DNA of 32,685 bases from Perkinsus chesapeaki ATCC PRA-425 (taxonomy: Eukaryota; Protista; Perkinsozoa), in the NCBI GenBank assembly GCA_013115145.1, contig JAAPAO010000401.1, positions 1 to 32,685 of the forward strand. Direction: 5' to 3'. The notes beneath the pieces were generated by a model. That model was not told the origin of the DNA. It saw only the letters and a list, made by a program, of their open reading frames with translations, and did not search any database. The position numbers and the translations under genes were made by a program. Of this stretch, positions 2,571 through 25,652 are shown piece after piece (position 1 is the stretch's first letter; the number at the start of each line of letters is the position of its first letter).

Positions 2571-5500
2571 TCACCTCAAGATGCTATTGGGATAGAACAG
2601 CGGGCCCATATCGGGCACATACCCCCAAACACGCACGAGATGATGTGTTCTCATAGTGGATGCAATCGAGGCTATTCTACGAAGTTCAGCTGTCGGACCG
2701 AGCTCAGTTGGACCAGACGCCTCCTCTGAGCGAAGAACAGCATTGCTCATGATTACATATTCGGTATCCGACGCACCTGCCCCCAGAGACCCTTGGTTAC
2801 TGACTACCGATGGGTCAGTTGGGTCCGTCAAGCAACCTGTAAACGAACCGTTCATGTTGTTCGAAAAAAATGTGCCTCACGTCCTCGAGCATGCCCTCCT
2901 CTAAGCGTCCTTGGAGTCAACAACGAGCGCACAAGATCACTTGTTCCATGATCTTGTTGCGACATTAAGGGCTTCGATGACAGACTACACCCGCAATAGC
3001 TCCCAAATATCGGTTAGTGCAAACTGTAAACTCAAAGCCATCAACTACGCACATGAGACTCATGTGTCATGCTCTCGGTGATGGTGGTGATGATGGCCAC
3101 GTCGATAAAAGTGGCCGACAGTAGCAATGCTTTTCCGTTGTATATGGTTATTTGGTCTGCTGCCGAGCATCTCCAGAGGAATGCTGTCGATCTTATTGAG
3201 CTCGGCTTTCGTGAACTCGGCGCGACCTGCGAAAGGCGACAGTGACCAGACGGAACCTCAATTTCCGACCTTTCTTATGAGCTACTCGACGCATAGTTAT
3301 ATACAGCCTGTCCACGCTATCCCCAGCTGTTCTGAGCAAGTGAACCTATTCAACGATGAAACTCCACGATAGTCTTGTAGGGGCAAACGACTTGTCTCTC
3401 GGCACTGGCTAGATGAGAACGTTCAAATCTGGGCACTGCCGCTTGGACTGTTGCCGAAACAGATATCAAATCCCTCCCACGAGCATCACCCTTGAGCAGC
3501 TGGCACCTGCCTATTGAACTGAAAACTCGGGCCCATCGAACAGAGGACCTCTTCAAGAATTCATCGACATCGATACCATCACTCTTCCCTTGCGCCTCGT
3601 CCATCATAGTAAAGAGGTCAACCATATCCTAATTTTCGCACCTCCATCGGATGATCACAGACAATTACCTGGCCTTGAATGTCTATGTGTCGAAGGAGCC
3701 TCCGCACGTGTTTGTCTTTCAAAGAGCTCTTCACCTCACGTCTATCCAGTGCCTGCCGAGTATAGTACTTGCGCTCAACCAAAGGTCATCACTACCCCAG
3801 ACCCGTCTGTGTCTGTTGCTAGGAAGACAGCCTTGAGTGCTTTAACCTATATTACAAACGACCTGCGACGCACAAGCCATACTAGACTCAGCGTGCATTT
3901 TTTTCAAATTGACCTTAGACAGCTGTGCAAATTCCTCAGGGAACTAGTGTTCTTTTGTTTGATTTGCCACTGAAATCCCCCTATGCGACAACGAGAAGAC
4001 CTTGGTGATAAAGCGTCTTGCTGAGGGAAAGTCCAGTATAGAGATTGCAAACGAACTGGGGAGAGACAATCACACATTCGAGAAATATCTCGTGAGATCC
4101 ATCTAAGTGGTATGCCACAGGAGAAGGTCCCTGCCAGAACCCGTTAATGGCACGAGGAGCGAAGAATGAAGAGAAAAATGGGTAGGTACCCTTTCCGAGA
4201 GGGCCTCTCGCGAGCAGCAGAGAGTTATCTGCAGGGGTACTCCAGGGAATCGGGAGCACCAGAGAGCCAGCTGCTAATGGTCATTGGCACTCCCAATTTG
4301 GAAAGGGCAAGGGAGCAAAGCGGGGACTTCCCCGACGGAACCAGTGATTGTGCAAGTACGCGTGTCGGAAGTATCATTGTGTCTCCCTAGCGCTAGTAGT
4401 GCTCACTGATGTCATATCAGTGATGTGTGTACCTTGATAGTCAAGGCTCTATGAATCTGCCAGACTGGTAGTACCAGTGTTGAATTTCGGTGACACGGTG
4501 TCACCAAAATTCAACACTGTGCCAGTGACCGTGGTTTTCCACCAGGTGTCAGTGACACCACGGACACCAGAACCACGATCGTAATACGACCGTCGTATCG
4601 AATCGACACTAGCGATTCCCTGTGGCACAGGGCCTGTGCCGATTGGTGAACGCTGATTCTCCCGAACATCTTGCGTATCTGCCGAATTTGTGGAGGTTTG
4701 TCATAATGCTTTGAGTGATGGCTCCGCCGAGCTAGGTAATATAATATATATCAACTTCGAGACGGAGGGGACCGAAGGCTGGAAAACGCAGGGTGCAGCG
4801 GCCAGGGGTGGGGGCACTACCGTAGGGTTTGAGGACGACGTAGCGCAAGACTTGGCAGTCTGAGAAGGGGATGTAGCCCAGGAGTCAGACGAGGGTGCTT
4901 TCTTGTGCTTATAAGGGCAGTCTGTTCGGCGACAGATACCATTGGCGACATAGTACATGCAGATGTTGTTGGCAAGACGGAAGTCGCGGAGCGTAGGACT
5001 CGTAGATGGACCACGGGCGCGTGTACGGGTAGAACCGGCAGTGTCGGCAGATTTTGCCAGAGTAGAGTACTCTCACAAGTTGTCACTAGCGATGTCATCA
5101 CTGATAGTCTATCAGTGATAATCATGAAGTCTTCATGTGACATTCCATCTCCAGAAATTTTCTAGCAGAAAATACGTGCTCTTCAGATTAGGTAATATTT
5201 CGGCGACAACGCACTCTTTAAAAGCTCCTGAGAGCAACCATACAAGAATCGGTAGGATGTTCGAGGGCGTTGGCACATCTCTTCTGGATACCCTGTAAAA
5301 GAAAGTTAGTAAGGAGTAAAGCCCCGAGGCAAAAGTTCGTCGGACAGGCCCAGTACGGCTACGGGCCATTGCAGCTGAATCGTCCCCAAACATGTTCTAC
5401 GGTACTCTTCCGGCACGGTTATAATATATGCACGAAGGATTTCGCAGGCCTAATGCACCTATGCAGTTTACAGCAAGCTCAACTGGCAACTTGCCAGTTT

Positions 5501-6705
5501 TGTTTGCGGCGTACAAGCGTTGTGTTTGCGCATTGCCAGTGACGATGATTCTTACTATCCTAGCGTTCTGCTCCGCCCTAACCTTCAGCGTATGGGCATC
5601 ATTTTCTTTGGCGCATACCTGACAGGAAAGGATTCCTTTCAAATGAAGTTTCTTAGAGCAGTCCCACCAGTGAGCCAACAAACGAGCGGTATTGGGTCTT
5701 GACTGACCTGTGCGCTTTCACACATCGCTCCCAGGAGCTGCTGCATGATAGTGTACGATGTGAGCATGATAAAAGCTATGAACATGAGACCAAACCCGAT
5801 AGCTTTCACTGGAGAGCTCTGCATGACCAACGGTCGGGCAATGTTACTGGACCAGTCATCAAGAGTGACAACCTGACATCAGGAAGGTAAATCCTACGGG
5901 CAACAGGCTCACCTGAAAAAGTGTGAACATTGACTTCCCCACTGATCCCCAATAGGTCTGGCCATTCCAGCCCCATTCGTTGTAGTAGTCGATACCCTCC
6001 AGAGGGACCAGAGCCGCAAAAATGACGCCAAAGACATAGAGCAGAAGGGCGAGCAAGGCGGCTACCCAGACGGTAGCTCGAGCTGACTCCATCATACCGT
6101 TCACCAGAATCCACAACTCTCGAAAGACCGGTATAGTCGCGACCACCTCCATCAACCTCAAGATACGCAGTGCCCGTAGGACAGCCAGTGTCTTCAGGGA
6201 TGCCGCCGAGGCCAGGATGTCTATCCATTGCAAACCCACCAGGATGATGTCGAATTTTGACCAATGGTCTTGAATGTATCTCCGCCAACCGTCCGCGTAT
6301 ATTCTGATAGCGATTTCAATGGAAAAGCAACAGGCGAATGCTGTCTCCAGCATAACCCAGTGAGACGCGTCCGGATCATCACTATCAGCGCTGATACCAA
6401 TCGTTATTGCATAGGCGGCGATGAGAAGGCCAACCGTTCCTTTGAATTTCATGCTGTGGACGACGTGTTTGCGTACGAACCCTCGGCCTTTAGAAAGCAC
6501 AGATTTGCCGCCACCGAAAAATGCATCAATGGAGCCATCTGTGGTGTCAGCAGTCTGAGGTAAGCTTGAAGCGTGTCACTCACTGAAGGAAAGATACCTT
6601 CCGCGAGTCGTTTGAGCTTCTAGTGTTATTTGGTCGTTGAGAGGATTCTTGCGTAGACGGTCTTTTGGGCGAGCCGGCTGTCGAAGGAGGTGTTCCACGC
6701 GTCAT
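2571..6705 (-). CDS. Single-domain (6TM) voltage-gated cation channel with C-terminal EF-hand pair
   Basis: Ion_trans S1-S6 in 5700-6500 (S4 LAVLRALRILRLME; pore MFTLFQ|VVTLDDWSSN). Splices across 5555-3847 into VKALKAVFLATDTDGSG|ALDRRE (canonical EF loop) and VDLFTMMDEAQGKSDGIDVDEFLK...CQLLKGDARGRDL. Start (6705) and C-terminal exons (end 3060 or 2571) are uncertain. Confidence 0.85.
3963..4106 (+). mobile_element. Tc1/Tc3-type transposase N-terminal HTH remnant inside channel intron
   Basis: Translates PLCDNEKTLVIKRLAEGKSSIEIANELGRDNHTFEKYL, resembling Tc1-family first HTH motifs (L..EK..I...L.EG.S..EIA..LGRDH.T). No start codon or catalytic domain seen. Confidence 0.55.
4404..4640. repeat. 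Dense cluster of short inverted repeats
   Basis: 21-bp arms 4475-4495/4499-4519 (1 mismatch, 3-nt loop), plus ACTGGTA-g-TACCAGT, GGTGTCA-g-TGACACC, ATACGAC-c-GTCGTAT, CCCTGTG-g-CACAGGG-CCTGTGCC, CACTGAT..ATCAGTG and CCTTGA..TCAAGG. Confidence 0.9.
4701..5072 (-). pseudogene. ATG-less open frame with CCCH-type zinc finger, possible retroelement gag remnant, inside channel intron
   Basis: Frame reads ...TLRDFRLANNICMYYVANGICRRTDCPYKH (C-x8-C-x4-C-x3-H, 4905-4961) followed by a Ser/Pro-rich tail. Upstream stop at 5073-5075. Confidence 0.4.
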
Positions 6706-7135
6706 CGACAGCAGCACAACGACTGTGCTCTAGAAATAAATTCGTAAATACAGCGATATGCGCTCAAATATATATTTATAGATCCAAAGCCGTGGTTGGA
6801 ACCAGGTCACTGGAAGCTATCCTGATGAAGCAGGGAGCAAAGCGGAGTCTGCATGAATCAGGTCGAATGGCAAAGTGTGGAGGATATGCTTGCTAAGGAT
6901 TCGTCCTTATAACTCGATTATCAAATCCCAGCCGCAGAACTGACAAGTTATGGAGCCAGATACAGACAAAATCAGTGAAGCTGACCAACAACCAAACGAA
7001 AACCGCGCTTTCGAAAACGCGGAGCGATGTACTTTGCATCGCTCCGCCCAATTTTCGCAACATTTCCGTATCGATGTCCTCTTTACCTTGTGCGTCACTC
7101 ATACGACCTAACCTATATTAGTTGTATTATTAACC

Positions 7136-7947
7136 ATGTTCCGGTGTGGTGGAAGCAGCCCAGCGTCTGTCTTATACTTTATCGAGCCCGATGCCGAGGG
7201 CTATTGCCCACACAGCGAGCTCTGCGACTGTCATTGCCATTGCCCGTGTAAATGCCATGAAGTTCCAAAGAGGTGAGCTTGGATTCCAAACGAGGTCGGA
7301 AAGATGCAACTGCATAGGTGTGGGAGAGGAATAGAAGTGGGCGATAAGCCGCTGATCGAATGTATTCGAGAGGGCTACTCAGTGTGGTGGCTGAAGATGG
7401 CCGTCTCCTTGGGAAAGTGGCGAGAGCTTAACCTTCAAGAATCTTATACGCTAGATACGCCGCTGCACGTGGCCTGTAGGGTTTGAATGGCTTGAAGAAG
7501 GGGCATTATGGTGGATCAGGTCAACCTCAGTACTATGACTTCTCCTTGGTAGAGCATTTCCTTCGACATGGCGCAGATCCTAATATCACCAATGTGAAGG
7601 GGGAGATAGCCCTCCACATTGCTGCGGGGTAGTTGAAGCCGTCCGCAGCTTGAAAAGATATTTTTAGGTCGAACAATTTGCCTTGTGCAAGGTTGCTGTA
7701 TAGCCACGGTAGTCGAATAGATCTTCTAGACTCTAAGGATCGCTTGCCGGAGGACAGGACCAGGGATAAACGGGTGAGGGGGTTAACTCCCAACGCTTCT
7801 GTATCTCAGCTGCTTGTGAGCATTAGTCAAATGGCCCCACTACAGACGCTCCTCATCGCAATGTATCGCTGCATCATCTCCTTACCAGTGTATCACGCAT
7901 CTGAAGCACCACATACGTGTCGAAGAAAATCTTTTAAAATCGCATAG
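7136..7947 (+). CDS. Small ankyrin-repeat protein with N-terminal Cys/His-rich motif
   Basis: Spliced: MFRCGG...YCPHSELCDCHCHCPCKCHEVPKR|CGRG...DTPLHVAC|QPQYYDFSLVEHFLRHGADPNITNVKGEIALHIAAG|SNNLPCARLLYSHGSRIDLLDSKDRLP. Last exon uncertain. Confidence 0.8.
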
Positions 7948-8131
7948 ATTCATATAAGTCGATAATAGTGCAGCAGATTTCCCTGCTTACATCTCAGATA
8001 CACAGGCTGTTAACATGTTAGATGTCCTCCTCTTGATGTCCAACTGATATCCTTATGGCTCCAGCCTATTGCGTTCTAATGGAGCAGGCGTATCTTCAAC
8101 CTCGGACTATTTTTCTTTCACCCTTCATACC

Positions 8132-9423
8132 ATGCTTTCCTCAACAACTGGTTTCACTAGTCGAGTCATGCCTCGCGCTCTGGCTGCCGGCTCTCGAGCG
8201 CTACAGGCACGGTGCATAGCGGTCTCAGCAGAGGCCACTCCGAACCCATCGGCGATGATGTTCACTTTGGAGGGCAGGAAGCCTGTTCTTGGACAGGGTG
8301 CAAAAAGCATGTCCTTCGAGAAGAACCATTGCGCCGACTCACCACTGGCCGCAAGCTTGTTCAGGGTAATACGGATGGCGAATTGGCACTCTCCGCGACT
8401 GTATGTGAAAAGGTGCATGGGGTTGACAAAGTGTTGCTAGCGGCGCGCCACGCGACAGTGACCAAATCACCGGAGACTGACTGGACGATGGTCCAGCCTA
8501 ATGTGGAGCTCGTTATATCACAGTTCTTCGACATTCCTAATGTTAAAGCCGTGAGTGCCCAGATGGCTAGAGGGCCCTATAGAGTATCTTTTTAGGTTGC
8601 ACCAGAGGCAATAGAGTACACTCCAGAGGGACAAGAGCAGCATATGGACGATGTTGTGGCTAGCATCCATGAGATACTGGAGCAGAGGATAAAGCCGTTT
8701 GTAATCATGGGAACAGTTGTGCTTACCTTTTGTGCTCTAATTTTACCTCCGAAAAGTTCACCACCATTGTCCATATTTCGGTAAATCTGTCGGCATTACT
8801 CTGCTTCCCTAGAAAATACGCTGTTCAGTGGAACCGCCCGCGAATCTGCGAAATCGAGATCTCACTTCGATTGTGGACATTTGTGGGTGAGGGAATGTGT
8901 GATACGTAATGTAGGCCTCCATCGCTTGCGTGCATTATGAAACGATCTAGTGCGATAGGTGACTTCCCCATACTATGCCATTCCCTGTGTCGTATTTTGG
9001 CACGACGTTTCTGCGGATTTTCGCCTGGAAGTCCCATCTATCCATGATTTTGGAAATCAGGGTCGTTCGGGTTTTCGGGTTTTTCATCTGCCAGAAACCC
9101 GACATGTCATTGATCTTTCTATATCCGCTTCACTCCACTGGTCCCTCCATCTCACACATTCTTCGGGCAGGTCGAACAGGATGGCGGCGACGTTGAATTC
9201 GTATCTTTCGAGCCTGAATCTGGCGAGCTGAAGATACGTCTCGTCGGTTCATGTAGGAGCCAGGGCGAATACTGGCGGTGAAGGCTTTCGCTTAGGCTCC
9301 GGCTGTCCCAAGTCTAGCGTTACGTTGAAGTTCGGAATTCAGCGAATGGTGTGCCATTACATTCCCGAGGTTAAGAATGTCATCAACATAGAGGAGGGTG
9401 AAAGCTCCGAGGTGCAACCGTGA
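8132..9423 (+). CDS. NFU1: NFU1-type Fe-S cluster scaffold (Nfu_N + NifU-C), paralog 1, mitochondrial-like leader
   Basis: [11 protein letters not shown]...SPLAASLFR|VHGVDKV...TVTK...W; [12 protein letters not shown]|[11 protein letters not shown]...LVGSC|[25 protein letters not shown] (CxxC). Arg/Ser/Ala-rich N-terminus. Confidence 0.92.
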
Positions 9424-9577
9424 ATCGCTTGGTGCTCCTCCTACTAGTTGCTGCTGTTAAATAATACGCTTCAATATCCTACTGTACACTGGTGTTCTGG
9501 AGGGGCAAGGAAGCCACTGAGTTGTCGTCAGCTGATAAGTGTCGGAATCGTCGGTGGTGTTTTGAGCTCGAGGAGCG

Positions 9578-10841
9578 ATGGTCTCGGTATGTGTTTTGGA
9601 AGGTGCGGTTGCTTTCGACAGTTGCATTCTGATTATGATAACCGCGGCAACCTCTGGATTGGACGGTTCCCTCAGCCGCGTATTGGCGTCTCATGCGCCG
9701 CCCTCACCTACATCCCTCACCTTTGAAGCGGCGGCCGTCTCGACGGCTGATGAGGACTCACCTTGCGGAAGGCAGACGATTGAAGTGTCATCGGCAACGA
9801 CCAAGGACGACAATGTTATGATATTCTGGCTCGAGGGGGATAAGAGGATACTGCCGTCGGGGGCCAAGGGGATGACCTTCAGTGATAAGGCGTCATCGAC
9901 CCAGTCTCCTTTAGCTTTGAGCTTATTCAAGGTGGTAGTAGTAGGAAGAAAGTAACTTTTGGATGTCGATCGAATTGCAAATAGTATAGTTGGATGGTCG
10001 ATTAGAAATTAGAATCTCTTTAAACCTATGTAGAGACGAAGAGACTGATTAGAAGTATGGCGCTTTGTTTTGGTCGGGTTGTATGGACTGATAGTTCTTT
10101 TTCTTGTTCGGCCAGAGGATTGGTCGACAGACTAGTATCAGGGCTGGGCTAGCCAACAGTCCAGTTAGGCAGGGCACGGTAGTTTTTTCCTTTGCTGCAT
10201 CTTCCTCTGGACTCTTTCCGTCGCCTTGAAGAAGCATGCTTCAGATAGCCGGCGTGGAGAAGGTAATTCTCTCCCAGCACAACGCATCGGTATCGAAGTC
10301 CGAGTCGATGAACTGGTGTTTTGTGAAACCAAAGGTCGAAGATGTTCTGTCGAAGTTCTTTGCAGTACCGGGGCTCCAGCCGGTAGGACCAGCGGTGCTG
10401 CCTCGTGGTCTAAGTCGAGTCGCTCTGGGCAGGTCTATCGCTCCGCATTGGAGTTTGAAAATGCAGCTGAGGAGGCCAAAAAGGCCGAGTTGATGAGGCG
10501 CATTGCGGAAGTGCTGGATGAGAAAGTTCGACCAGTGGTAGCAATAACGGGCTTGCCGAGGTTGACGTGATTTGTGGCAGTTACAAGATGATGGGGGAGA
10601 CGTTGATTTGGCAGACTTCGACGAGGAGACTGGAGTGCTTAATGTCCGCCTAAAGGGAGCATGTACGATACCAGTCTAGGAAGGACTGAGAATGCGGATA
10701 GGTGCCGGCTGCCCGATGTCGAGCGTCACTCTGAGGTTCCGGATTGAGAACATGCTCGTGAGGAATGTCCCCGAGGTTAAGAAGGTCATCAACATAGCTT
10801 CAACAGACGTGACGCAGTTCCCTAAGGAAATAGACTTTTGA
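9578..10841 (+). CDS. NFU1: NFU1-type Fe-S cluster scaffold, paralog 2 (start 9578 or 9635)
   Basis: SPLALSLFK|IAGVEKVILS...W; IAEVLDEKVRPV|LQDDGGDVDL...LKGAC|AGCPMSSVTLRFRIENMLVRNVPEV; stop 10839-10841. Intron positions match paralog 1. Confidence 0.88.
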
Positions 10842-11329
10842 GCTTAGAAGTAGTTCCAAAATGGAACGTATACATATTTCGTCGCCTGTTGTCCCCAAGG
10901 CATTCCCCTGTCATACCAATTATTGACCTTTTTCTGCCCTTGTTTATTCGCCGATTGTCTCAGCTCATCGAAGCTCATTACTGCTGGAACTGATGCCTTG
11001 TAGCATTTTCACAGTGTGTAGAATAGTAAGTTATATCCGTGTATTGTCGGGCAGTAGAAGAATCACTTCTCGGTCCTCGTAAGAGTATCGTCTTGAGTTA
11101 AGTGGCATAGTTGCAGTGAGCTCGAATGTGCCCTGATGTCCCAGACGTCTGGACAGCCGTCGGTCAGTTTTTCGGAGGTTATCTATCAAATTGGGCGCGA
11201 AATAGGACTTTTTCGTGAATTTCGGGAACTCAACCAGATGAACTTTTTCGTTGCAAGTGGATTAGTGCACGCGTGCGCATGGTGAGAGGATTCGCTGAGC
11301 ATTTTGTCATGTAGTTGGTTACCATCATT

Positions 11330-13115
11330 ATGAGTGTCCCCGAGGGTCTACATTCCTCCATCTCATCCTCCTCCTCCTACTCGTTATCTCCGAGTCAGCC
11401 CCTGTCCAGACTGGAAGGTTATCGTATACTCTATGTACCTTTATCGAAGGGCTCCCCATTAACACGTCAACTTATGGTTAAGCGGAATAGTCAATCTTCA
11501 GATCAACCAGGAGAATGGCCGAATGAAAGTAGAGTTCATAATGCAACAACATTCTGTCTCTTTTAAACAACCTGAATCAACTCCATGCCCGGTTGTCTAT
11601 AGAGGCGGTTCCCCGGCGCCGAATGTTATGGTTGGACGAGGAAAGGTTAGACTCGTACCAGCACTGATTTTCCATTTAGTAGGATGAGAATAGCAGATAG
11701 ATCTAAAGCTTATAGCATGGTTATCATTCCCTATGGATATCAAAGGTTTATAAAGAGACCTCCACTTTATTTAATAATTCATATATGATTTATATACTCA
11801 GTTTTGCTCTTGGTGTCTTGCATTGAAGCTCTCATTGACACTAAACTAATAACAGCTAGATCGACTCCCCCTCCTCAGGAACGCTTTTCGTAGCCCATCT
11901 AGATTACTGGGTCACAGAGAAGGCTCTAGCTCGTCTCTTCGAAGCCTTCGGTGACGTCGAGAGAGTCCGAATAAAGAAAGCTGTTAAACCTGCACAAACC
12001 AGCGCTGATAAAGCGGTAGGAATCTCATATCAATTTTTTGGCGAGGAAGATTCTTATCAGGATGGCATAGTCACGGACTTGGTCTTTGGCCATGTTCTCT
12101 TCGTATCAGAGGAATCTATGACTAACGTGCTGGAGAGTCCCAGCGCATCGATGGAGCTGGTAAGTTGAAATGTCCTGGCTCGGGATTGAACCAGGGTCGT
12201 TCGAAGGTCCATCGTGGCTTATGCTTGCCTTTGGCTAAAAGCGTTCTTAAGACGGCAGAGAAGAGCTCTCTACCGGCATCGAGCCAAGTGTCCACTACCA
12301 GGACTGTGGTGCATGGCGTGCCCGTTGTGTAGGCGTTGAATTCTTAATAGCGATGATGAGTAAGTTTGATAGATATTGTGATCCGCTAACTCTACAGAGA
12401 CATGTCGATGTGGCAATGGCTGAGCATGAAGACGAGGAGGCCGCTGAGAAAAGACGCCAGCAAGAGGTGAGGCTTTGAACTGCTGCGCGGAGAATCTTAT
12501 GGTGTCAGCCCGAGGTGGACGAAGATGGTTTCACGGTTGTTCGAGGCACGGGTGTTACTCGAGGTGCAGATGGATTCGCGGTGAAGGGTTATCGTGTGCC
12601 GACGGCAGCCACTGCTGGGGTGGACTATGGTGAACTGTTCGGAGGTAAAATTATAAGGCAACTCATTGGTTAAGCGGATGGCAGGTATCGGTCGAGGAGA
12701 TACTCAGCAGCGCAAATTGGAAAAAAAGAAGGCTAAGAAACAACAGGTGAGGGGAGGTAGATCCTGTTTTAAGGGGAGGTAGATCCTGTTTTAAGGGGAG
12801 GTAGATACTGTTTTAAGGGGAGGTAGATGCTGTTTTAAGGGGAGGTAGATGCTGTTTTAAGGGGAGGTAGATGTTGTTTTATAACATAGTTTTATCATTC
12901 TCAAACGTCGCTCACTGATGGGGCTCATTGGTAAGGTAATGGACTTCTACCGATTCCAGCATAGAGAACGTAAACGAGCAGAGTTTATAGAGGAACAACG
13001 GAGGAACTCGATTGATAAAGAGTAGGCCAATGATACCTGCTAACGACGGAAATCATGTACTGTGCTCAGGACTGTATCGGATATGAAGAGGCGTAAGATA
13101 TTCGAGATTAAGTGA
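11330..13115 (+). CDS. RRP7: Ribosomal RNA-processing protein 7 (RRM + RRP7 C-terminal domain)
   Basis: LEGYRILYVPL; GTLFVAHLDYWVTEKALARLFEAFGDVERV; PEVDEDGFTVV; KKKAKKQQ|VMDFYRFQHRERKRAE; ends KRRKIFEIK*. Confidence 0.88.
12750..12881 (+). repeat. 22-bp minisatellite x6 in RRP7 intron
   Basis: Unit AGGGGAGGTAGAT(C/A/G)CTGTTTTA repeated six times (the last unit has T in place of the following C), starting 3 nt after the GT donor. Confidence 0.97.
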
Positions 13116-14137
13116 TTTCCTCGAGATCATCCTATCTGCTGTAAAATGCAGAAACGTTTCCTTACCAAACTGGGCGGTTTGGAGTTTGAGTAAATTGTTG
13201 CAAGAAAATGGCGAAGATACGCGGCCAAGAGAACACCGCGAGGAATCATTGCAAAAGATGCGACAGGTCAAACCGTAAAGCAAGGTCACGCCGGTAAGAA
13301 TCATGTCATCAGAGCGAGCTCTGCGAGCTTCTGGCACATTGAGCCGTAGCGCGCAGATGGTCAGGAGATACTCAGAGTAGAACTAGTCCGACAATGAATA
13401 TTGAGTGAGACAACCCACAAGGAAAATGCTCTCTTTAAGGAGAAAGATACATTCCTCAGTAACAATCGAAATGGCATCAGGCTGCCGTTTCGTGGCGATA
13501 TTTTTCACGTACTACAAAATTGTGTCACGTTGGTGACGTGAAACATAGAAGAGTGATATTTGCCGTCTTGGGAACGGTTCATCTCAATTCAACTGTGCCA
13601 GTGAAATGCCTCGCTCCGCCAGCCGGAGGGGCACTTCATCGGATGTGATCTAGTTGTTGGGATAGGGCAGCCACGGTGGCTGAGCCACCGGATGTCAGGT
13701 TTGTGGATCTCGGGGGTGTCGCTTGAGGGCATTTACAAACCCATAGACCAGTGCACTTATGCGGAAATGTGGCAAAACCCGAATGATTCGGGATGAACAA
13801 TAGGCATCACAATTACTCTTTCACGAATGTGGTGAAGATCAGGAATCAGAATCTGATTATCAGATGGAGAAAAGATGCATGACGAGCGATGAGGAAGAGA
13901 AGGAGTTGCATACTCACGGGTAACCGGGAAAGAAGAACCGTCACGGTCACAAAGTCACAACGGTGACGCGCGGCGTCACGCGCCCGAAACGGAGCTTCAG
14001 TGAGATTCCTTATGATAGTTGAGAGATCAGCGTTGTCCTCCCTCGATCTACCACGCGTATGTTTCTGTCGGGTGAGTTACTGATCTCCACGATTGGAGTT
14101 ATGCTATCCCGTGCACTTACAACACTCTCTCCGTTAT

Positions 14138-14413
14138 TGAGTTACTTAATCAAGTTGTCAATTAGTTAATATCTGATGTACTTAATGAGTTACTTAATCA
14201 AGTTGTCAATTAGTTAATATCTGATGTACTTAATGAGTTACTTAATCAAGTTGTCAATTNNNNNNNNNNNNNNNNNNNNNNNNNNNNNNNNNNNNNNNNN
14301 NNNNNNNNNNNNNNNNNNNNNNNNNNNNNNNNNNNNNNNNNNNNNNNNNNNNNNNNNTTAGTTAATATCTGATGTACTTAATGAGTTACTTAATCAATTA
14401 GTTACTTATCAAG
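14138..14413 (+). repeat. 48-bp AT-rich minisatellite spanning an assembly gap
   Basis: Unit TGAGTTACTTAATCAAGTTGTCAATTAGTTAATATCTGATGTACTTAA, about 2.5 copies before and about 1 after the N-run. True copy number unknown. Confidence 0.95.
14260..14357. other. Assembly gap (N run)
   Basis: 98 Ns flanked on both sides by the 48-bp repeat. Confidence 1.
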
Positions 14414-14440
14414 TCTTCCCCTAAAAGTTGATAACCAGTT

Positions 14441-14854
14441 ATGATGCCGTCCTATCTCATTCTGATCTGTCTGGCCTACCAGTGTTATGCTTCCTACCCA
14501 GATGGGACCTTCAGTGGGCAGGTCGCTAACCCATACCTAAGGGTTTTGTGTGAGTTCCGTCAACTACCCACTCCCTATGTTGTCATCCATGTGAGCTGCA
14601 ACACGGTTATGCCGCCGGCTATTACGGCACTACCCATTCATGAAGTTGCTGGCACATGTGGTCAGCAACTGAGCGTGAACGCGACGGCTGCGACTATCGC
14701 AGTCATGGCGAGTATGACAAATTACCTCAACTCTATGTGTCCTGGTCGCGGCTACAATGCGGGAGACTTCATACTGTACGATGAGGCTACACAAGATATG
14801 GTGTATGATGTACACGTGGATGTCTTCACCATTAGGCTCTCTCGCGTCAACTGA
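14441..14854 (+). CDS. Intronless secreted protein, family member A (137 aa)
   Basis: Signal-peptide-like N-terminus; shared motifs P.GT/R(F/Y).GQ..PYL.V.C, V.CN, LN.MCPGRG..AGDF, YDV.V. Confidence 0.85.
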   Translation: MMPSYLILICLAYQCYASYPDGTFSGQVANPYLRVLCEFRQLPTPYVVIHVSCNTVMPPAITALPIHEVAGTCGQQLSVNATAATIAVMASMTNYLNSMCPGRGYNAGDFILYDEATQDMVYDVHVDVFTIRLSRVN

Positions 14855-16054
14855 GCTAAGCTGACAATCGTCAGAGGATTGTGGTTCACGTGGCATAAGT
14901 TATGCCTCTCATCTTTTGTTTAAGAAATGGATTCTGCTGACCGAAAATATTTCAGTTTATTCTAAGCAGCAGCGGGGATAACCCATCCTGTATGGGACAT
15001 ACATCTAGTTAGGCCACAGTAAGCCTTTTTTAAGAATACTTGTGTGTCGAGTTGAGAGTGTAGAGTCCTTGGGAGTAGAGCTAGAAAACCTAAGCTCACT
15101 GAGCATTGCTCAGCTGAGGCAATTCCCCTCGGGCTACTAAGAACCTGCAAACCGTGTCGACCCGACACTGTCGGGTTACCCAGCACGCTTGGTGCTGTAG
15201 CGTAGGAACTTCCTGCCCCGCTCAATGAGCGGCGCTCATGAGGCCTGAATCCGGTCATTAGGCTAGCCTTCGAGCTTGGTGAGCCACTGATAGGCTAGAC
15301 CCTTGAGAGAACTTCTCCTGCGCTTAGACAACGAGAATACCGAAACGAATCTTTTCTAACGAGATGGGGAAAGAAGGTCGAAGTAGACCAGCGCAAGACA
15401 GTCAACTTTCGAAGTTCGAACTGAGGCTATGAACATGACAGCATACTAGTCATACCGGAATCCGGTAACCGGATATACGGGAAAAGGGTATTAATGATAC
15501 AGCAATGCGAATTGATACCTCCATAGTATGGAGGTATTCCTAGCGATAGGTTTCTCTGATACTCGTGTTTGTGGGATCGTGGTAGAGTATCATCCAACAC
15601 ACTGCGTACTCGAAGCTATTCAGTGCGGTTCTCACACTGTCTTTTTTTATTGTCCAACGTGAATCCAGGCGCGTTCTCAGTACTTTCGGCCCTTCGGCAA
15701 AGATTCCTGACTGAAACTCTTTCATGTTGAGAGAGCTTTCTTATTGAAAGGGTGTCAATCCAATCGACTTGTTCAACTAAGGTCTGAGTTTGCCAAACTC
15801 AGTTTGAACTTACGAAGTCTTTTGCAGTGGAACTTCGAACGCTTTAAAAATTGTAAATAACAATCTCTCTGTGACAGAGACTCTGTCGATGGTGCATTAG
15901 TACGTTCGGTCCGCCTTCGCGTATGTGGCCTTGGTATACTCACCACAAATTGTGATCCACAACCCTTCTCTCAATCCTTGTTGAATTCTTAAACTTGAAG
16001 ACTCTTCACATCGGTCGGCAACACCATTTCCACATTGGCCGATATGTCACATAT

Positions 16055-16900
16055 CACACCCCCTCCCACAAGTTTAGAAAAAGTTGTGCGCGGCCTGAAA
16101 AGTAAGTTCTTACATCTAACAGCCACACTTCTGTAGTAGACACCCAGGCATGCTGGTTATACGATGTTAGCGTCCCGTCACTCAATTAGCTTCCAATCCG
16201 CATATACTCAACTGCTCGCATTTTACAACGTCACGCAATCTTAGCAAAACTTTGAAACACCTTCCTTCCTCGTACTTGAAGCACGTTCCCTTCTCCAGAA
16301 TAACTCGGACGCTCCACAGTTCCACTGTGACAAGCTTTTAAGTGACAATGTCTAAAATCTGACTCCACAAGACAAGGCTCGCATTAGAGCCATGTACGCG
16401 CAGAAGCTACCAAGTGGCCGTTGTCATTACTCTCGCAAGGTGATTGCTGAAGCCAATATTGTTCATGTGGCAACTGTGAGCAGAGTGATGACCGCGAACG
16501 ACGATGCCATTCAGCAGAAGAAGAGAGGGCCCAAGTTCAAGCTCAACGACCGTGCCCGCCGCCGAGTTGTTCGCTACTTCTTCCACAACCCTGGGTCTTC
16601 TGCTCCTGGTGCTATTAAAGAGCTGGGTCTACAGGTCTCTGCGGAGGGTGTTCATCCGTTCATGCGCGATTTGGATGCACAGTATGTCAAGCAACTTGAC
16701 TCAAGTGAGTGCAACTCCCCCCTTGGCTGATGCGCACAAGGCTGCGCGCGTTAGCTTCGCGAAACAGCACCTCCATTCTCCCACCGATTTCCGTAAGTGG
16801 GTATTGAGCGACGAAAAAAGTTCTGCCATGACGGGCCAGACGGCCTGTATTACGTATGGAACCTGCCTGGTAGCGTCGAGCAGTTCAAAAGCAAACGAGC
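16055..16900 (+). mobile_element. 3'-truncated Tc1/mariner (Tc3-like) transposon with frameshifted transposase (16348-16900)
   Basis: NLTPQDKARIRAMYAQK...KKRGPKFKLNDRARRRVVR...PLADAHKAARVSFAKQHL...KWVLSDEK/KFCHDGPDG. Absent at the paralogous site near 20687 (ACATAT|TATAT). Confidence 0.88.
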
Positions 16901-16977
16901 TATATCTGATCTCAACTTTAGTGCTGTCCGAGATCGTCTTTGCCACCAACTTGTTCATAGTGCACATCAGTACTATA

Positions 16978-17349
16978 CACTGCGCAACAAAGCTTCAGCA
17001 AGTTGTGTTTTTTTAGGATTTAGGAACAATTTAGGTGTGCTAATCAATGAATACCTCAGGTATAAGTTCCCTAAGCATAACAATTATACCCTCGAAGTTT
17101 CAGAGACAAACTCTTTGTCAGTATTGAGAAACAGGGAAATCGTGCAAAATCTGCGCAACATATTCTTAGCAATCACAGCTTGAAAATGCGCGCAAAATTC
17201 ACGTTTTTGTTAGGGAAGCATATTAAAGCGATTCGTTCAGAGCTAACCACATACACCTCTGAAAAGCTCACCCTTTCACTACTGAATGACATGAGTTGCT
17301 AAACTCATGCTATGAGTTACACAACTTGCTAAAGTTTTGTTGCGCAGTG
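16978..17349. mobile_element. 372-bp Tc1/mariner-type MITE with TA target-site duplication
   Basis: TA|CACTGCGCAACAAAGCTTCAGCAAGTTGTG ... CACAACTTGCTAAAGTTTTGTTGCGCAGTG|TA (28/30 TIR match). Empty site CAGTACTG-TA-TAACGAG at about 20755-20772. Confidence 0.93.
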
Positions 17350-18649
17350 TATAACGAGAGCGGGTGGAGGCGAATAAACAGCTCTCGGAGTCACACCGTA
17401 GTTGGCAGCTGTATTCGCGCGGCAGCTCTGGGCACTCCATAATACCAACCAGCTAATATTGTTGGATATCAGTATTATCATATCACGGAAGGCAGGCTCA
17501 GTGAGCCCGACTCACGTTGGTGGACCTCTCTGTTTGTGGATCATTATGATCTGCAAGTCAACGATTCCACAAGCTCCATACTGATATAGGGTGACACCCT
17601 CAGGGTGGCCCGAAAAGAAGCAAAAGCTTTCAAACACCGTATATGCCACCAAAATATTTGTCCATCTGCAAAAATTGGTCAAAACATCACATCTATTCGG
17701 AACACCCTGTACATTTCGAATTCCGTCAGTCACTACTTCGGAGCTGATACTTGAAGTCCCTCGATATCACATTATCATGAGGCCGAATAAATTTCCTTTA
17801 AAACTCGTAAGTTACAAATTAAAATCTTACGTAAATTATCTAAGGTCTTTGAGCGCCACGGGAGAAGTTGTGTCTTCGGGAGACAAGCCACATTCGTATA
17901 TAATAGTCTACTCCAAGGTGCGTGAAACTGCCGATTTTGGACGCTTATTGAACCCAGTGAGTAGACCTAACTTAGTACGAAATTTGTACTACTAATCCCA
18001 CAACCGGGTTCACGCTCGAACCGGACAACTGGGTTCGTGACGTGGCACATAGGCGAGCGGTACATGTCACCTTGGGAACGGGCTGTCCCGAAGTAAAAAT
18101 CCAATAAAGTAGTGGACTAGCTGTCCCAGTGGCCCTGAGTAAGCCACACTAATAAGGCTGCCTTATCAAGACAATCTTTGGAATATGATCTGGTGGTTAG
18201 GACAATGTAGCCGTCAGATCTTAGGTTCGGGAATGTAAAACTTCGAGTTGAGCCAAAGGTGCCACATGGGACACTTGCATTTATCCCGTAAACCAGTGCG
18301 CTTATGGCCCAATGTAACACTGAGGATGGCTACCGAATATCCAGCGATGACGGTCACGGATCATGCACGGGATAATAGTGGGAAATACGATGGCAAAAAT
18401 TCAAATAAATAGGGAGCGCCGGTGAGGACTAGTATGCTCGAGGCCCTCGGATCGAGGGTATTGTAGTTAAGGCAGGTGTCGCCAAGGTGACGTGACGGGA
18501 CTCCCGTCACGGGAGTATAGCTTCAATCACAGTCTTGGATTGGTAATATTGGCATCCAGTGGCCACCGTTTTTTCCTGTATAGTTGGAACTGATTGGCGT
18601 TCATCACAATCCGGGTAAACCGCACTTCTGAGTGCCGTGTACCACGTAA

Positions 18650-18677
18650 TCTTCTTCATCACAGTTGAGAATCTCGC
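18650..18677 (+). promoter_or_regulatory. Candidate trans-splice acceptor (pyrimidine tract + CAG|TTG) 13 nt before the ATG of gene B; conserved before C and D
   Basis: TCTTCTT(C/T)ATCACAG|TTGAGAATC...ATG at 18664, 19588 and 21880; similar AG|TTG before several unrelated genes. Confidence 0.5.
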
Positions 18678-19091
18678 ATGGTCGTCTTCGGTATCGTCGC
18701 TCTCTGCCTCACCTTTCGCTGTAACGCTGTTCTACCCAGTGGAAGATATGTTGGCCAAGCCAGGAGCCCTTATCTGAAAGTTGATTGTGCTTTCTACAGA
18801 ACCCCTAAGCCCTTCGTAACCATTACTGTGACCTGCAACCCGACTATTCCAGAGTCGCCCATGACTTCAGTCGACATTCTCCAGGTGCCTACTAGGCCTA
18901 AGGAGTTCTGTGTCAAGCGGAACCCTGAGAACATTGGAAAGATGAAGAATTTTACAGATCGTCTGAATGGTATGTGTCCCGGGCGTGGCTTCAACTCAGG
19001 AGACTTCGTGTCCTACATAGAGGTCGATAGCGGCTTAGAATATGATGTAAAAGTAAAAAACAGTAAAGTGAGACTTTACCTCGAGGCCTGA
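18678..19091 (+). CDS. Intronless secreted protein, family member B (137 aa)
   Basis: MVVFGIVALCLTFRCNA signal; same family motifs and cysteines. Confidence 0.85.
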   Translation: MVVFGIVALCLTFRCNAVLPSGRYVGQARSPYLKVDCAFYRTPKPFVTITVTCNPTIPESPMTSVDILQVPTRPKEFCVKRNPENIGKMKNFTDRLNGMCPGRGFNSGDFVSYIEVDSGLEYDVKVKNSKVRLYLEA

Positions 19092-19601
19092 TTGTATTTA
19101 AGTAGAAAGCTCCTGCTCGGTAGAGGGCCACATGAGGGTAGCCTTTCTGAGGTACGAGCAATTTTATTTTATCCATTTAGCAAATGGACTTTACTCTTTC
19201 GCTGGATCAACTCTATCGTGCAGCATAATGCTGCGAATAATAGTGAAATATCTCGACATTTCCCTAGCCGAGAACTCGTCTCATTGAATAGCAGGTCTCG
19301 AGTTGGTTGATAATCAGTGGTTATGACTCATAACTTATGAGGTGCCATTGGGAATTCCAATCCGGGATTCTAGAGGTATATTCTACCTACTCGAGATATT
19401 TTAGTTAAGACAGGTGTCGCCACGGTGACGTGACGGGAGCATAGCTATAATTACAGTCTTGGATTAGTAATATCGGCATCCAGTGGCCACCGTTTTGTCC
19501 TGTATAGTCGGAGCTGATTGGCGTTCATCACAATCCGGGTAAACCGCACTTCTGAGTGCCGTGTACCACGTAATCTTCTTTATCACAGTTGAGAATCTCG
19601 C

Positions 19602-20015
19602 ATGGTCGTCTTCGGTATCGTCGCTCTCTGCCTCACCTTTCGCTGTAACGCTGTTCTCCCTAGTGGAAGATATGTTGGCCAAGCTAGGAGACCTTATCTA
19701 AAAGTTGGTTGTGCTTTCTATAGAACTCCTAAGCCCTTCGTAACCATTACTGTATCCTGCAATCCGGTTATTCCAGAGTCGCCCATGACTTTAGTCGATA
19801 TTATAAAGGTGGCTGGTAGATCTAAAGAGTTCTCTGTTAAGCCAAATGCTGAAAATATTGGAAGGATGAAGGATCTCACAGATCGTCTGAATATTATGTG
19901 CCCAGGTCGTGGCTTCAGCGCAGGAGATTTTGTGCTCTACACAGAGGTTAATAGTGGCTTAGCATATGATGTAGATGTAAACAAAACGAAAGTTAGACTG
20001 TATCTCACGATCTAA
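19602..20015 (+). CDS. Intronless secreted protein, family member C (137 aa)
   Basis: N-terminus nearly identical to B; C-terminal half closer to D. Confidence 0.85.
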   Translation: MVVFGIVALCLTFRCNAVLPSGRYVGQARRPYLKVGCAFYRTPKPFVTITVSCNPVIPESPMTLVDIIKVAGRSKEFSVKPNAENIGRMKDLTDRLNIMCPGRGFSAGDFVLYTEVNSGLAYDVDVNKTKVRLYLTI

Positions 20016-20099
20016 GCTGAGATCTTCGAAAACATCCCAAATAAGTTACATCCGCCATCTTTTTGTTGATGGCAGCCTTACTGAGATATAACCAACCTT

Positions 20100-21550
20100 A
20101 TTTTGTCCTTTTTCTCGGGGGGGTTGGCATTATTATGTTGGCACTTGGATATTTTGTCAGCCTAGATCCTAGGCCCTAGAACCCATTCTATTTAACAACA
20201 TGTGTCGAGTTGATGAAATGGTTATGTGAAAAGTTCCCGCGAGAAACTCATTCTATAGGTATATTCTGCCTCTGCCCATGCGAGAAACTCTCGAATTCCT
20301 TCGCTAACAACACACGATGATGAGGGAACCTATTCCATTTGCTTTTATATCGGCACACGACTACACTTAACCTCCTCCGAGAACCTGGGCCGCGTTTCTC
20401 GGGAAGGAAGCAGGGAGCTGCGGTGCTGAAAGTCGGCTTGCCCAGGGGTGTAGAGCTACTGAGTTTGAACTTACGAAGTCTTCTGCAGTGGAACTCCGAA
20501 TGTCGCTCACTCTACAACCTCTCTCTCGGTGGTGCATTAGTACGTTCAGTCCGCCATCGTCGCGTATGTGGCTTTGGTATACTCACCACAAATTGCGGTC
20601 CACAACCCTTCTCCCACCAATCCTTGTTGAAGACTCCTCACGTCTGTCGGCAACATCAGTTCCACATTGGCCGATGTGTCACATATTATATGTGAGTTTA
20701 ACTTTAGTGCTATCTGGAGTTTGTCTTGGCTATCAACTTCCTTATAGTGCACATCAGTACTGTATAACGAGAGCGGGAGTAGGCGAGTATACAGCATTCG
20801 GAGTCACACCGTAATGGGCAGCTTTGTGTCCCGAAAAGAAACAAAGGCTTTCAAACACCGTATATGTCACCAAAATGTTTGTTCATCTGCAAAAGTTGGT
20901 CAAAAAATCACATCTTTTCGGGACACCTATATATACATCACTCAGTACTTCGGAGCTGATACTTGAAGTCCCTAAATATCACGTTATCACAAGGCAGGAT
21001 GAACCTCCTTTACAACTCATAAGTTACAATTTGAAATCTAAGGTTTTTGGGCGCATCGGGAGAAGTTGTGTCTTCGGGGACAATCCACATTCTTATATAA
21101 TAATTTACTCGAAGGTGCGCGAAACCGCTGATTTTGGATGCTTAAGTTTTACGAATATTAAATCAAGTTAGTACGGAATTTTCACAACTAATCCCACAGG
21201 AGGGTTCAAACTCGAACCAGGCAGTTCGATTCGGGACGTGACACATAGGCGAACGGTACATGTCACCTCAGGATTGGGCTGTCCCGAACTACAATCCCAA
21301 TATAGTAGCGGACTACTTGATCGGGGCGCTCTGAGCAAGCCACAATCATAAAGCACTCTTACGAATATGGTTTAGTAGTTAGGATAATGTTGCCGTCAGA
21401 TCCTCGGCTCGTGAATGTAAAATTTCGAGTTGAATCAAAGGTGCCACATGGGACACTTGTATTAGTCCCGTGAACCAGTGCACTTGTGGCTCAATGTAAC
21501 GCTGGGGATGGTTGCCGATCGTTCAGTTATGGCAATCAATGATCATGCAC
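20100..21550 (-). pseudogene. Decayed partner gene (copy 2)
   Basis: ALH*ATSALVHGTNTSVPCGTFDST with stops. Nucleotide-colinear with copy 1 but lacks both transposon insertions. Confidence 0.5.
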
Positions 21551-21893
21551 GCCAGAAGACAACTAAACCGATATCAAAAAGTCAGGTAAATAGCGAGCGA
21601 TGAGGAGGACTAGTATACTCGGGGGCCCCGAGTCGGGGCCCGCGAGTGGTGAGTGACATAGCAGTGAAGACAGAATCACCACGGCGACGTGCTGGGAGTA
21701 TAGCTTCTATTGCAGTCCTGGATTAAGTCTTGATCTAAGAGTCTTAGACTAAGACTAGTGATATTGGCACCCAGTGGCCACCATTGCGGCCTTTATAGCT
21801 CGAACCAATTGGGGGTTTATCACAATTCGGCTAAACCGCATTTCTGGAAGCCTTGTACCACATGATCTTCTTCATCACAGTTGAGAATCACTC

Positions 21894-22310
21894 ATGGCCT
21901 TCTTTGGCATCGTCGTTCTCTGCCTCACCTACTGCTGTAGTGCCGACTTCCCATCTGGAACTTACGTCGGCCAAATTGCAAACCCTTACCTAAGAGTTGT
22001 TTGTTCTTTCTACCGACCTCCTAAGCCCTTTGTCATCATTAATGTAACATGCAACCGGGCTATTCCATATTCACCCCTAACTACAGTCGACATTGTCGAG
22101 GTGCCTGGCAAAACTCCGAAGGAGTTCTCTGTTAAGCCAGATACTAAAAATATTGGAAGGATGAAGGAACTCACAGATCGTCTGAATGGTATGTGTCCAG
22201 GTCGTGGCTTCAGCGCAGGAGACTTCGTGGTCTATACAGAGGTCAATAGTGGCTTCGCATATGATGTGGACGTAAAGAAGACTAAAATGAGGCTGTACCT
22301 CAGGGTCTGA
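21894..22310 (+). CDS. Intronless secreted protein, family member D (138 aa)
   Basis: MAFFGIVVLCLTYCCSA signal; FPSGTYVGQIANPYLRVVC...MCPGRGFSAGDF. Confidence 0.85.
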   Translation: MAFFGIVVLCLTYCCSADFPSGTYVGQIANPYLRVVCSFYRPPKPFVIINVTCNRAIPYSPLTTVDIVEVPGKTPKEFSVKPDTKNIGRMKELTDRLNGMCPGRGFSAGDFVVYTEVNSGFAYDVDVKKTKMRLYLRV

Positions 22311-22449: not shown

Positions 22450-23400
22450 TATTATGCTAGCACGTAGATATTCTGCTAGCCAAGTACCCGTCTCATTCAA
22501 TGGCTTGTGTCGAGTTGGTTGGTAATAAACGCTTATGTGAAAACTTTTCACATTTCACTATTGTCGAAATAGGCGTTGAAAGGTGTAGAGGTAGATCCTG
22601 CCCATGCAAGAAATTCTGAAACGTCTCCACTAATAGCACACGATAATCAAGAGACATTTTTCGAAGACGCTTCTGAATTGACATACGGCTGCAGTGTAGC
22701 CGCAACACTCGTAATCTCTTAAGAACGTAGGCCGAGGTTTTGGGGAAAGGTAGCAGTGAGCTTTGAGGTCTACGAGTGGGTGTGCAGCAGACGTGTATAG
22801 TTGCTTTTGCCTGCACTTGGAGCTTCCAATAATAGAACACTCCATCTGATGGAGTCCATCAAGGCCGTACAGACTTGCCCTCTTTCAGTCGGTGAAGATG
22901 AAATGATTGACGTTCGTACCGTTCTAATGACGGTAAGACTTAGTGTACTTGTAGTTTCCGAGTAGGAATCCCACACGACTACAGCAGTCTTGTCCCTTTG
23001 AGGCTGTTGACTGTGACATAGAATCTCTATAGGCCACCTTTTCGCGTTCGGTCCTTTCTATTGAGCCATTCTTCTGATTTTCTCGATGCTTTGAGCTGAC
23101 ATGTCCCGATCATGGCAAATGATACCGTTCAATTAGAAAACAACGGATTGCGTGCTTTTTTTGCTCGCACATGTCGTATATGTGAAACGGTTGATCGATT
23201 CGTGTAATATCATACCCCATGTTCGAAGGCATGTACATGCCGAATTACGCCACTCAGTAGTTATTTTCCGGAGAAAGTACATCGCATGTTCGAATATCAG
23301 TCGGGCAGAAATGACCGAACGAAGACAGGGTAAACTTCCTTTAAAAAGGGACCACACTTTTGGCCGCATCGACAGAGTGGACCCCTCGGGAGCCAAGTCA
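22450..23400 (-). pseudogene. Divergent decayed partner gene (copy 3, partial)
   Basis: Acceptor ttttaaag|GAAGTTTAC matches ttttaaag|GAAATTTAT of copy 1; in-frame stops; shared 3' flank motif GTGTCGAGTTG. Confidence 0.35.
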
Positions 23401-24810: not shown

Positions 24811-25652
24811 GTCACTAATAGACAACCTTTAAAGGAGGAAGTCCAAACACTCAATGTTAAGTTGATTTCCGTGCATTGTTGGTATCAATTCAAGGAGCAC
24901 CTGTCCGCATCGTTCCCCCTCAGTGCTGTTCACTTCTGTCGCACTATGTATTACGTTGTGTTTGGAATTTACGTTCCGTAGTGGAGTCAAGATTCAGTGC
25001 CACACTACTCCAGACTATCGGAAGTTGGACCATACGACGAAAATTGTTTTTATAAGTATGGAATACCAGAGGTCAGCCCGTTCGCCGAATGGGAACATCC
25101 ACCAGACCGAGGCGCAATCGATCTCCGAATGACATTCGGAGCTCGATGGTCTAATTTCGGAGAACTAACAATATAGATTTCGTGGCGCGTGACTTGTCTA
25201 TACCATTTCGGAGGATACAAAATTTGCAGATAAGTCAGTTCAGTTCGTAAAGCAGCCGTCTTGAAAGCGATAGACGCAAGTTCGATGAATGGAAGAGTCG
25301 TTTTAAAGTCAAAACGGGGTTTGCATCTGAAAATCGCGAAACCAACTGTCTGAAAAACCAACTCTTCAATTCAGCAATTGTTTTGTACTTTAACACGGTC
25401 ACTTGGCCCCACCACTCTCCGTCACATGACAGTCTTTATTGAGAGGTTGGCCGTACTCTAGGGTCGATACCATCCGTACTAACCGTCATTCAAAAATGCA
25501 GCATAGGAGGTTCCGAACTATCTCACCAAATTTTCGCAGCTTAATTCGCCATTTTGTGTTTTACACAGTTTGGGATCTTTTCATGAGTGAACAAGTGCCG
25601 GGCAGCCAAGTATCTTGTTGACAATCTCTTGCAGTTGTACTATACTATTAAC

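Follow-up and report, generated by a model that had tools for sequence, protein, structure and literature searches.

A recurrent 22-nt palindromic scar in the non-coding DNA of Perkinsus chesapeaki, probably the excision footprint of hAT transposons

A 32,685-nt stretch of DNA from the protist Perkinsus chesapeaki ATCC PRA-425 (contig JAAPAO010000401.1, assembly GCA_013115145.1) is rich in short inverted repeats whose arms are separated by a single base. Our analysis shows that most of these palindromes are parts of one fixed unit of 22 nt, here called a scar, which stands in place of an 8-bp site (N1-8) and consists of N1-7, the reverse complement of N1-8, and N2-8, so that 14 nt are gained. 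We consider it likely that the palindromes are excision footprints of cut-and-paste transposons of the hAT superfamily, mended in one dominant way. The stretch, hereafter the window, is the whole of contig C2840 (our numbering) in a fragmented assembly of 41.7 Mb with 3544 contigs and gaps.

The window contains 44 inverted repeats with perfect arms of at least 7 nt around a 1-nt centre; dinucleotide-preserving shuffles of the same sequence (n = 40) gave 1.85 on average and at most 5. Such repeats had been pointed out before, and every site listed in the original prediction reads as it was given there. The enrichment then claimed is in fact stronger, although its count has to be corrected: arms of at least 9 nt are found in eight cases, not four, against a shuffle expectation of 0.17. 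Arm length has its mode at 7 nt (26 cases) and declines beyond that roughly as chance extension would have it; the long arms of 9 to 11 nt represent a 7-nt arm that happens to extend into the flank. In the same window scan, palindromes with spacers of 0, 2, 4, or 6 nt were at the chance level of the shuffles, while spacers of 3, 5, and 7 nt were raised, mainly through nesting inside the 1-nt-spacer palindromes.

The third, partial copy that was said to follow many of the palindromes is indeed there and is always N2-8 of the 8-bp site, completing a fixed 22-nt unit in which two palindromes overlap, 7 nt apart. Parts of such units, at no more than two mismatches, account for 32 of the 44 palindromes; the other 12, including those at 5481, 15515, 22535, and 25123, have no third copy. 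An enrichment of four-unit arrays (copy, inverted copy, copy, inverted copy) was considered and rejected, as matches in the flanks follow the binomial expectation. With 14 constrained positions, the scar model finds 11 perfect units in the window, 7 with one mismatch, 15 with two, and 11 with three, where about 0.0001, 0.005, 0.1, and 1.2, respectively, are expected by chance. We compared 45 geometries, in which the site length ranged from 6 to 10 and each outer copy lost 0 to 2 bases. Perfect matches came only from the geometry with an 8-bp site and one base lost per outer copy; the 44 alternatives gave none in the window. Likewise, 147 kb contained 44 perfect 22-nt scars, and footprints with shorter palindromic additions were near chance. 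In every scar the two centres are the complements of N8 and N1. All 22 bases can be predicted from the 8-bp site, there are no element-derived bases, and no sequence is common to the scars. Mismatches, when examined for position, were not over-represented at the two centre bases.

The scars and related sites of the window are given below, with no strand assigned; "predicted at" gives the position in the original prediction, and rows without further remark come from the scar-model scan.

4618-4639, perfect scar, target CCCTGTGC
13668-13689, perfect scar, target CAGCCACC (predicted at 13669)
13844-13865, perfect scar, target AATCAGAT
15218-15239, perfect scar, target CCGCTCAT
15453-15474, perfect scar, target TACCGGAT (predicted at 15454)
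15866-15887, perfect scar, target TCTCTGTC (predicted at 15866)
18494-18515, perfect scar, target GACGGGAG, in paralog A only (predicted at 18491)
19320-19341, perfect scar, target GTTATGAG, at the end of paralog A
21618-21639, perfect scar, target CTCGGGGC, in paralog C (predicted at 21617)
21734-21755, perfect scar, target TCTAAGAC, in paralog C only (predicted at 21740)
22840-22861, perfect scar, target CTCCATCA
4189-4210, scar with one mismatch
4457-4478, scar with one mismatch
4577-4598, scar with one mismatch
5626-5647, scar with one mismatch
15092-15113, scar with one mismatch (predicted at 15099)
15154-15175, scar with one mismatch
15786-15807, scar with one mismatch, which is the first centre base (predicted at 15784)
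4406-4427, scar with two mismatches
5101-5122, scar with two mismatches, the 11-nt arms being 7 nt plus 4 flank bases (predicted at 5097)
5151-5172, scar with two mismatches
14982-15003, scar with two mismatches
15843-15864, scar with two mismatches
16686-16707, scar with two mismatches, within an open reading frame (ORF) that has a sub-threshold match to a Tc3-type helix-turn-helix
17494-17515, scar with two mismatches
17587-17608, scar with two mismatches
17975-17996, scar with two mismatches
18152-18173, scar with two mismatches
20160-20181, scar with two mismatches
20673-20694, scar with two mismatches
22687-22708, scar with two mismatches
13965-13984, 20-nt variant scar, target GACGCGCC, the middle copy lacking one CG of a CGCG repeat
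5481-5499, orphan palindrome with 9-nt arms and no third copy (predicted at 5481)
15515-15537, orphan palindrome with 11-nt arms and no third copy
22535-22553, orphan palindrome with 9-nt arms, made up of N1-7, the centre, and the inverted copy plus 2 flank bases, the right copy of the site being missing
25123-25141, orphan palindrome with 9-nt arms, three mismatches from the scar model
19432-19439, unscarred 8-bp site GACGGGAG in paralog B, the empty site for the scar at 18494
20461-20468, unscarred 8-bp site GAGTTTGA in a paralog, the empty site for the scar at 15786

The scars are unevenly spread, with three lying within 63 nt at 4577-4639, three about 62 nt apart at 15092-15239, and almost none over 5.7 to 13.6 kb and 23 to 32.7 kb of the window. 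Local hopping or targeting of open chromatin is a possible reason for the clustering.

The sites themselves carry a sequence signature. Among 70 scars with at most one mismatch, T occupies target position 2 in 47% and A position 7 in 54% (background, 27%; P = 1.3e-9), and G at position 1 and C at position 8 each reach 38% (P = 1.3e-4); the positions flanking these 70 scars have no base bias. The scan is blind to the target sequence, and the T2/A7 signature is independent of the geometry. It matches the hAT consensus nTnnnnAn, which is the preferred 8-bp target of Hermes (PMC10368747). The centres of the scars, each complementary to a base that would have stood next to a transposon, also fit the hairpin rule known from Ac/Ds footprints in plants, yeast, and Candida, where palindromes are centred on the complement of the element-abutting base (PMC5873905; PMC1978519). 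Both target copies are kept, each minus the base adjacent to the element, which is what an 8-bp duplication in a hAT footprint should leave behind.

Comparison of tandem paralogs gives the direction of the change. Copies A and B (85.6% identical over the aligned block) form the closer pair, and copy C is the outgroup. The scar at 18494 exists in A only, while B and C keep the single 8-bp site; thus, the palindromic state is derived and not ancestral on the paralog tree. The empty sites originally proposed, 20459 for 15784 and 19430 for 18492, are borne out, with a length difference of exactly 14 nt in each pair. Such insertions account for the larger length differences between the paralogs: A and B are separated by no insertion or deletion other than the scar at 18494 over 634 aligned columns. 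Two more scars are lineage specific: the one at 19320, for which the ends of B (20220) and C (22531) have an unscarred site, and the one at 21734, which lies within a 32-nt insertion found only in C. The extra DNA reported at 21740 is accordingly absent from A and B. The scar at 21618 in C is matched in A, at the corresponding position (18437), by a decayed counterpart carrying three mismatches, indicating that scars are inherited and decay as ordinary DNA does. For the orphan palindrome at 22535, paralog B reads GTGAAAAG, in which N8 is G; in accordance with the hairpin rule, the palindrome is centred on C, the complement of this base. The palindromes are therefore what they were first taken to be, namely, nonrandom, derived, and locally templated inverted insertions.

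The C-specific insertion occupies window positions 21711-21742 (alignment columns 191 to 222). When the 14 nt of the perfect scar are subtracted, an 18-nt near-palindromic remainder is left relative to A and B; it is in part a repeat of the flank upstream, and no single scar model describes it. Each of the three copies also contains one of four ORFs of 137 to 138 amino acids (14441-14854, 18678-19091, 19602-20015, and 21894-22310, the last three in copies A, B, and C). The two of these that were tested have no Pfam match, and the copy A ORF (137 amino acids) has no relative outside the contig.

Scars are not peculiar to the window. The enrichment proposed for the genome as a whole was recovered in 65.8 kb from 20 other contigs, which yielded 13 perfect units and 8 with one mismatch. 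An unbiased sample of 98 kb has 0.24 perfect scars per kb and 0.66 per kb at no more than two mismatches, which extrapolates to about 10,000 perfect scars genome-wide and about 27,000 at up to two mismatches. In 159 kb, 45, 25, 35, and 55 scars have 0, 1, 2, and 3 mismatches, respectively; this nearly flat spectrum suggests that the scars accumulated steadily over a long time. None was found in the homology-supported ORFs (an ion-transport exon at 5859-6500, the Nfu_N ORFs, and the four 137/138-amino-acid paralog ORFs). Scars accumulate in non-coding DNA, and a gain of 14 nt in an exon would shift the reading frame.

Excision through hairpins on the flanking DNA is established for Hermes and Ac/Ds; for Perkinsus, we infer the hairpin intermediate, its distal opening, and the annealing join. 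Given the fixed geometry, the T2/A7 signature, and the centre rule, the initiating lesion is best read as a pair of transposase-made hairpins at a target-site duplication. Insertion of the element would duplicate an 8-bp target, N1-8, preferably nTnnnnAn. On excision, the transposase would nick one base into each flank and close each flank as a hairpin, so that the left flank would continue from N1-7 into the complements of N8, N7, and the bases before them, with the right flank as its mirror image. The host would then open both hairpins several bases 3' of the tip. The left tail would read c8...c1, with cN standing for the complement of NN, and the right one N1...N8 on the opposite strand; the two tails would be complementary because both are inverted copies of one 8-bp duplication. 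Annealing of the tails in register, trimming of flaps, and fill-in would give N1-7, the reverse complement of N1-8, and N2-8, whatever the positions of the opening nicks. The join may be of the microhomology or annealing type, perhaps with a theta-like polymerase.

The exceptions to the 22-nt unit are compatible with this route. Only two 20-nt variants were found, both with targets that contain a dinucleotide repeat (GACGCGCC and CACACGGC) and both lacking one repeat unit in the middle copy; they fit annealing that was shifted by 2 nt, or slippage at a later time, and thereby support an annealing join. The twelve orphan palindromes are consistent with a rarer kind of repair, the joining of a long palindromic tail to a resected partner.

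Several known systems share features with the scars. Ac/Ds footprints (plants, Saccharomyces, and Candida) likewise retain both 8-bp copies, each without its element-adjacent base; their palindromic additions have the complement of that base at the centre, arms reach up to 20 nt, and joins often use microhomology (PMC5873905; PMC1978519). However, they are heterogeneous, with 28 types among 128 Candida events and mostly 0 to 3 added bases, whereas Perkinsus has one product that includes the full inverted 8-bp site and is fixed in the genome by thousands. Hermes and hobo have the same 8-bp duplication and nTnnnnAn preference (PMC10368747), while the putative Perkinsus transposase falls in a DUF4371/TTF-finger branch. 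The P nucleotides of V(D)J recombination also stem from hairpin-capped ends that are opened off-centre to give short palindromic additions, but these are 1 to 4 nt long, without target duplication, complementary tails, or a stereotyped join. Synthesis-dependent microhomology-mediated end joining (SD-MMEJ) by polymerase theta produces locally templated, sometimes inverted insertions and joins by microhomology; there, template position and length vary and the microhomology is synthesised, while in Perkinsus the geometry is set by the 8-bp duplication.

A candidate source of the scars is resident in the genome. The hAT dimerisation domain (PF05699) has 11 matches, with open frames of up to 532 amino acids. 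One of them lies in a 530-amino-acid ORF on contig C616, for which NCBI has an identical protein of Perkinsus chesapeaki. Proteins related to it carry DUF4371, PF27073, and PF05699 in combination, among them one of P. olseni with 66% identity, and no sequence match to this putative transposase exists in the PDB. By comparing element fragments across contigs, we located a terminus of the corresponding element, CAGGGGCGGCTCTAGGCC, at L024:837. The same terminus (CAGGGGCGGCT...) bounds an internally deleted, non-autonomous copy of 612 bp at C2941:11931-12542, which has CAGGGG... inverted ends, a terminal inverted repeat that matches at 11 of 12 positions, and a perfect 8-bp duplication, CATATATG. 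Thus, the genome houses hAT elements with transposase, inverted ends, and an 8-bp duplication. Other candidates were set aside: for a hAT copy on C18 and its fragment on C2874 no ends could be defined, for a derivative on C2857 neither partner end nor duplication was found, and the left mosaic of C616 was uninformative. Perfect 22-nt scars lie beside or within hAT-derived sequence at L033:2180-2205 (C2857) and L024:967-988 (C616), which suggests nested insertion followed by excision.

A number of observations weigh against hAT excision as the source. Resident elements are very few relative to the scars, with five termini of the identified family genome-wide, and no element with an 8-bp duplication and inverted ends turned up in the 113 to 122 kb scanned for these features. 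The T2/A7 signature is absent from the six flanks of the CAGGGGCGGCT family, a small sample. No single site was observed in both states, filled by an element and scarred, so that the link between transposon and scar is circumstantial; allelic contigs for window positions 15700-15900 and for the C2941 element's flank are missing from the assembly. A literature search found no single dominant 22-nt hAT footprint in any organism. Flank hairpins with a one-base offset of the nick were reportedly described for the Hermes/hobo type by Zhou et al. 2004, and the offset is otherwise taken from the centre-base rule. Finally, transposases of Mutator-like elements (MULEs), which are also flank-hairpin formers, are more numerous (PF10551, 25 matches).

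The last point leads to the alternative that another flank-hairpin superfamily made the scars, the likeliest being MULEs that generate 8-bp duplications in the Perkinsus lineage. We regard this as unlikely, if worth keeping in mind. The PF10551 matches outnumber those of hAT and have long open frames (up to 1368 amino acids; e.g., C3474:6525-6821 and C1114:3615-3845), making Mutator-like elements look more abundant than hAT here, and the MULE Muta1 forms flank hairpins and 8- or 9-bp duplications (PMC5499845; PMC5225508). Yet MULE duplications vary from 8 to 10 bp, and scar models of 9 and 10 bp yield no perfect match; the T2/A7 consensus is that of hAT, whereas Muta1 has no target preference and about 90% of its excisions are precise where duplications are present (PMC5225508). 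Still less probable is a host or domesticated nuclease that forms hairpins at recurrent 8-bp staggered breaks from which no mobile element departs. Such an enzyme would account for the scarcity of elements relative to scars, and several of the hAT-like ORFs are long, open, and could be domesticated; a scar, however, needs two 8-bp copies and hence a prior duplication, a hairpin break at a single copy would yield even-length palindromes, which are not enriched, and the genome does contain a hAT copy that has both inverted ends and an 8-bp duplication.

The original prediction ascribed the palindromes to snap-back or template-switch synthesis with a theta-like polymerase, as in SD-MMEJ, at ordinary breaks or forks and independently of transposons. 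This cause is disfavoured by the single geometry, the T2/A7 signature, and the centres that follow the hairpin rule, and we give it very little credence. It is true that the inserted bases are inverted copies of adjoining DNA, that SD-MMEJ is known to make such insertions, and that family-A polymerase genes are present. But one exact geometry covers nearly all events where template position and length would be expected to vary, such synthesis offers no reason for a T2/A7 bias within an 8-nt frame, and even-length palindromes and those with other spacers are not enriched. Moreover, the two family-A loci tested, of several in the genome, give better scores with bacterial Pol I than with polymerase theta. 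A clear polymerase theta was not identified in this comparison, which speaks neither for nor against a theta-type join. The idea that unusual repair stems from an absence of Ku is unsupported, since one Ku-domain match (on C189) is above the cut-off; the genome also has one match to the SNM1/Artemis-type DRMBL domain (C245). A sequencing or assembly artefact, for which the fragmentation into 3544 contigs with gaps might speak, is scarcely credible: the scars show graded decay by point changes, one is common to two paralogs with divergence, they avoid homology-supported ORFs, and their target sites carry a sequence bias.

The window has one assembly gap and a few features apart from the scars.

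14260-14357, no strand, assembly gap: a run of N in a 48-nt tandem repeat (98% matches), outside any scar

The sequence to the left of the gap stops at unit position 30 and that to the right resumes at 29, so that the array would be in phase if the true gap measured 46 or 94 nt. The array is non-coding, no listed ORF of at least 90 amino acids overlaps the gap, and the nearest scars are those at 13965 and 14982. The gap has no bearing on the scar finding. Positions 12728-12903 hold about eight tandem copies of a 22-nt unit, AGGGGAGGTAGATCCTGTTTTA, in a stretch with G-rich skew. A tRNA gene lies at 2313-2392 on the minus strand (Rfam RF00005, 42.8 bits). The ORF that holds the two-mismatch scar at 16686 encodes 170 amino acids (16504-17016, plus strand); its Tc3-type transposase helix-turn-helix match is below threshold (E = 0.005), and it is possibly a decayed Tc1/mariner remnant.

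Footprints of the hairpin type are already known for hAT transposons, as dozens of heterogeneous experimental events. What sets Perkinsus apart is one dominant product, a full inverted duplication, fixed by thousands, of which our literature searches found no other case. For hAT excision in Perkinsus, a broader view may be taken, the grounds for and against which we find evenly balanced: Perkinsus would mend hairpin breaks almost only by distal opening and annealing, so that every hAT excision would leave the same 22-nt mark. The scars would then be a record of more than 10,000 transpositions by elements that are now nearly absent, and the main source of medium-sized insertions and deletions and of new hairpin-forming palindromes in non-coding DNA. 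Past cut-and-paste activity, which is normally invisible, could become countable and datable in this genome, and the way in which hairpin breaks are opened and joined in a non-model alveolate parasite could be read from sequence alone. The scars also explain 14-nt insertions and palindromes that otherwise resemble an exotic mutational signature, and each of them provides the strains and species of Perkinsus with a clean presence/absence marker.

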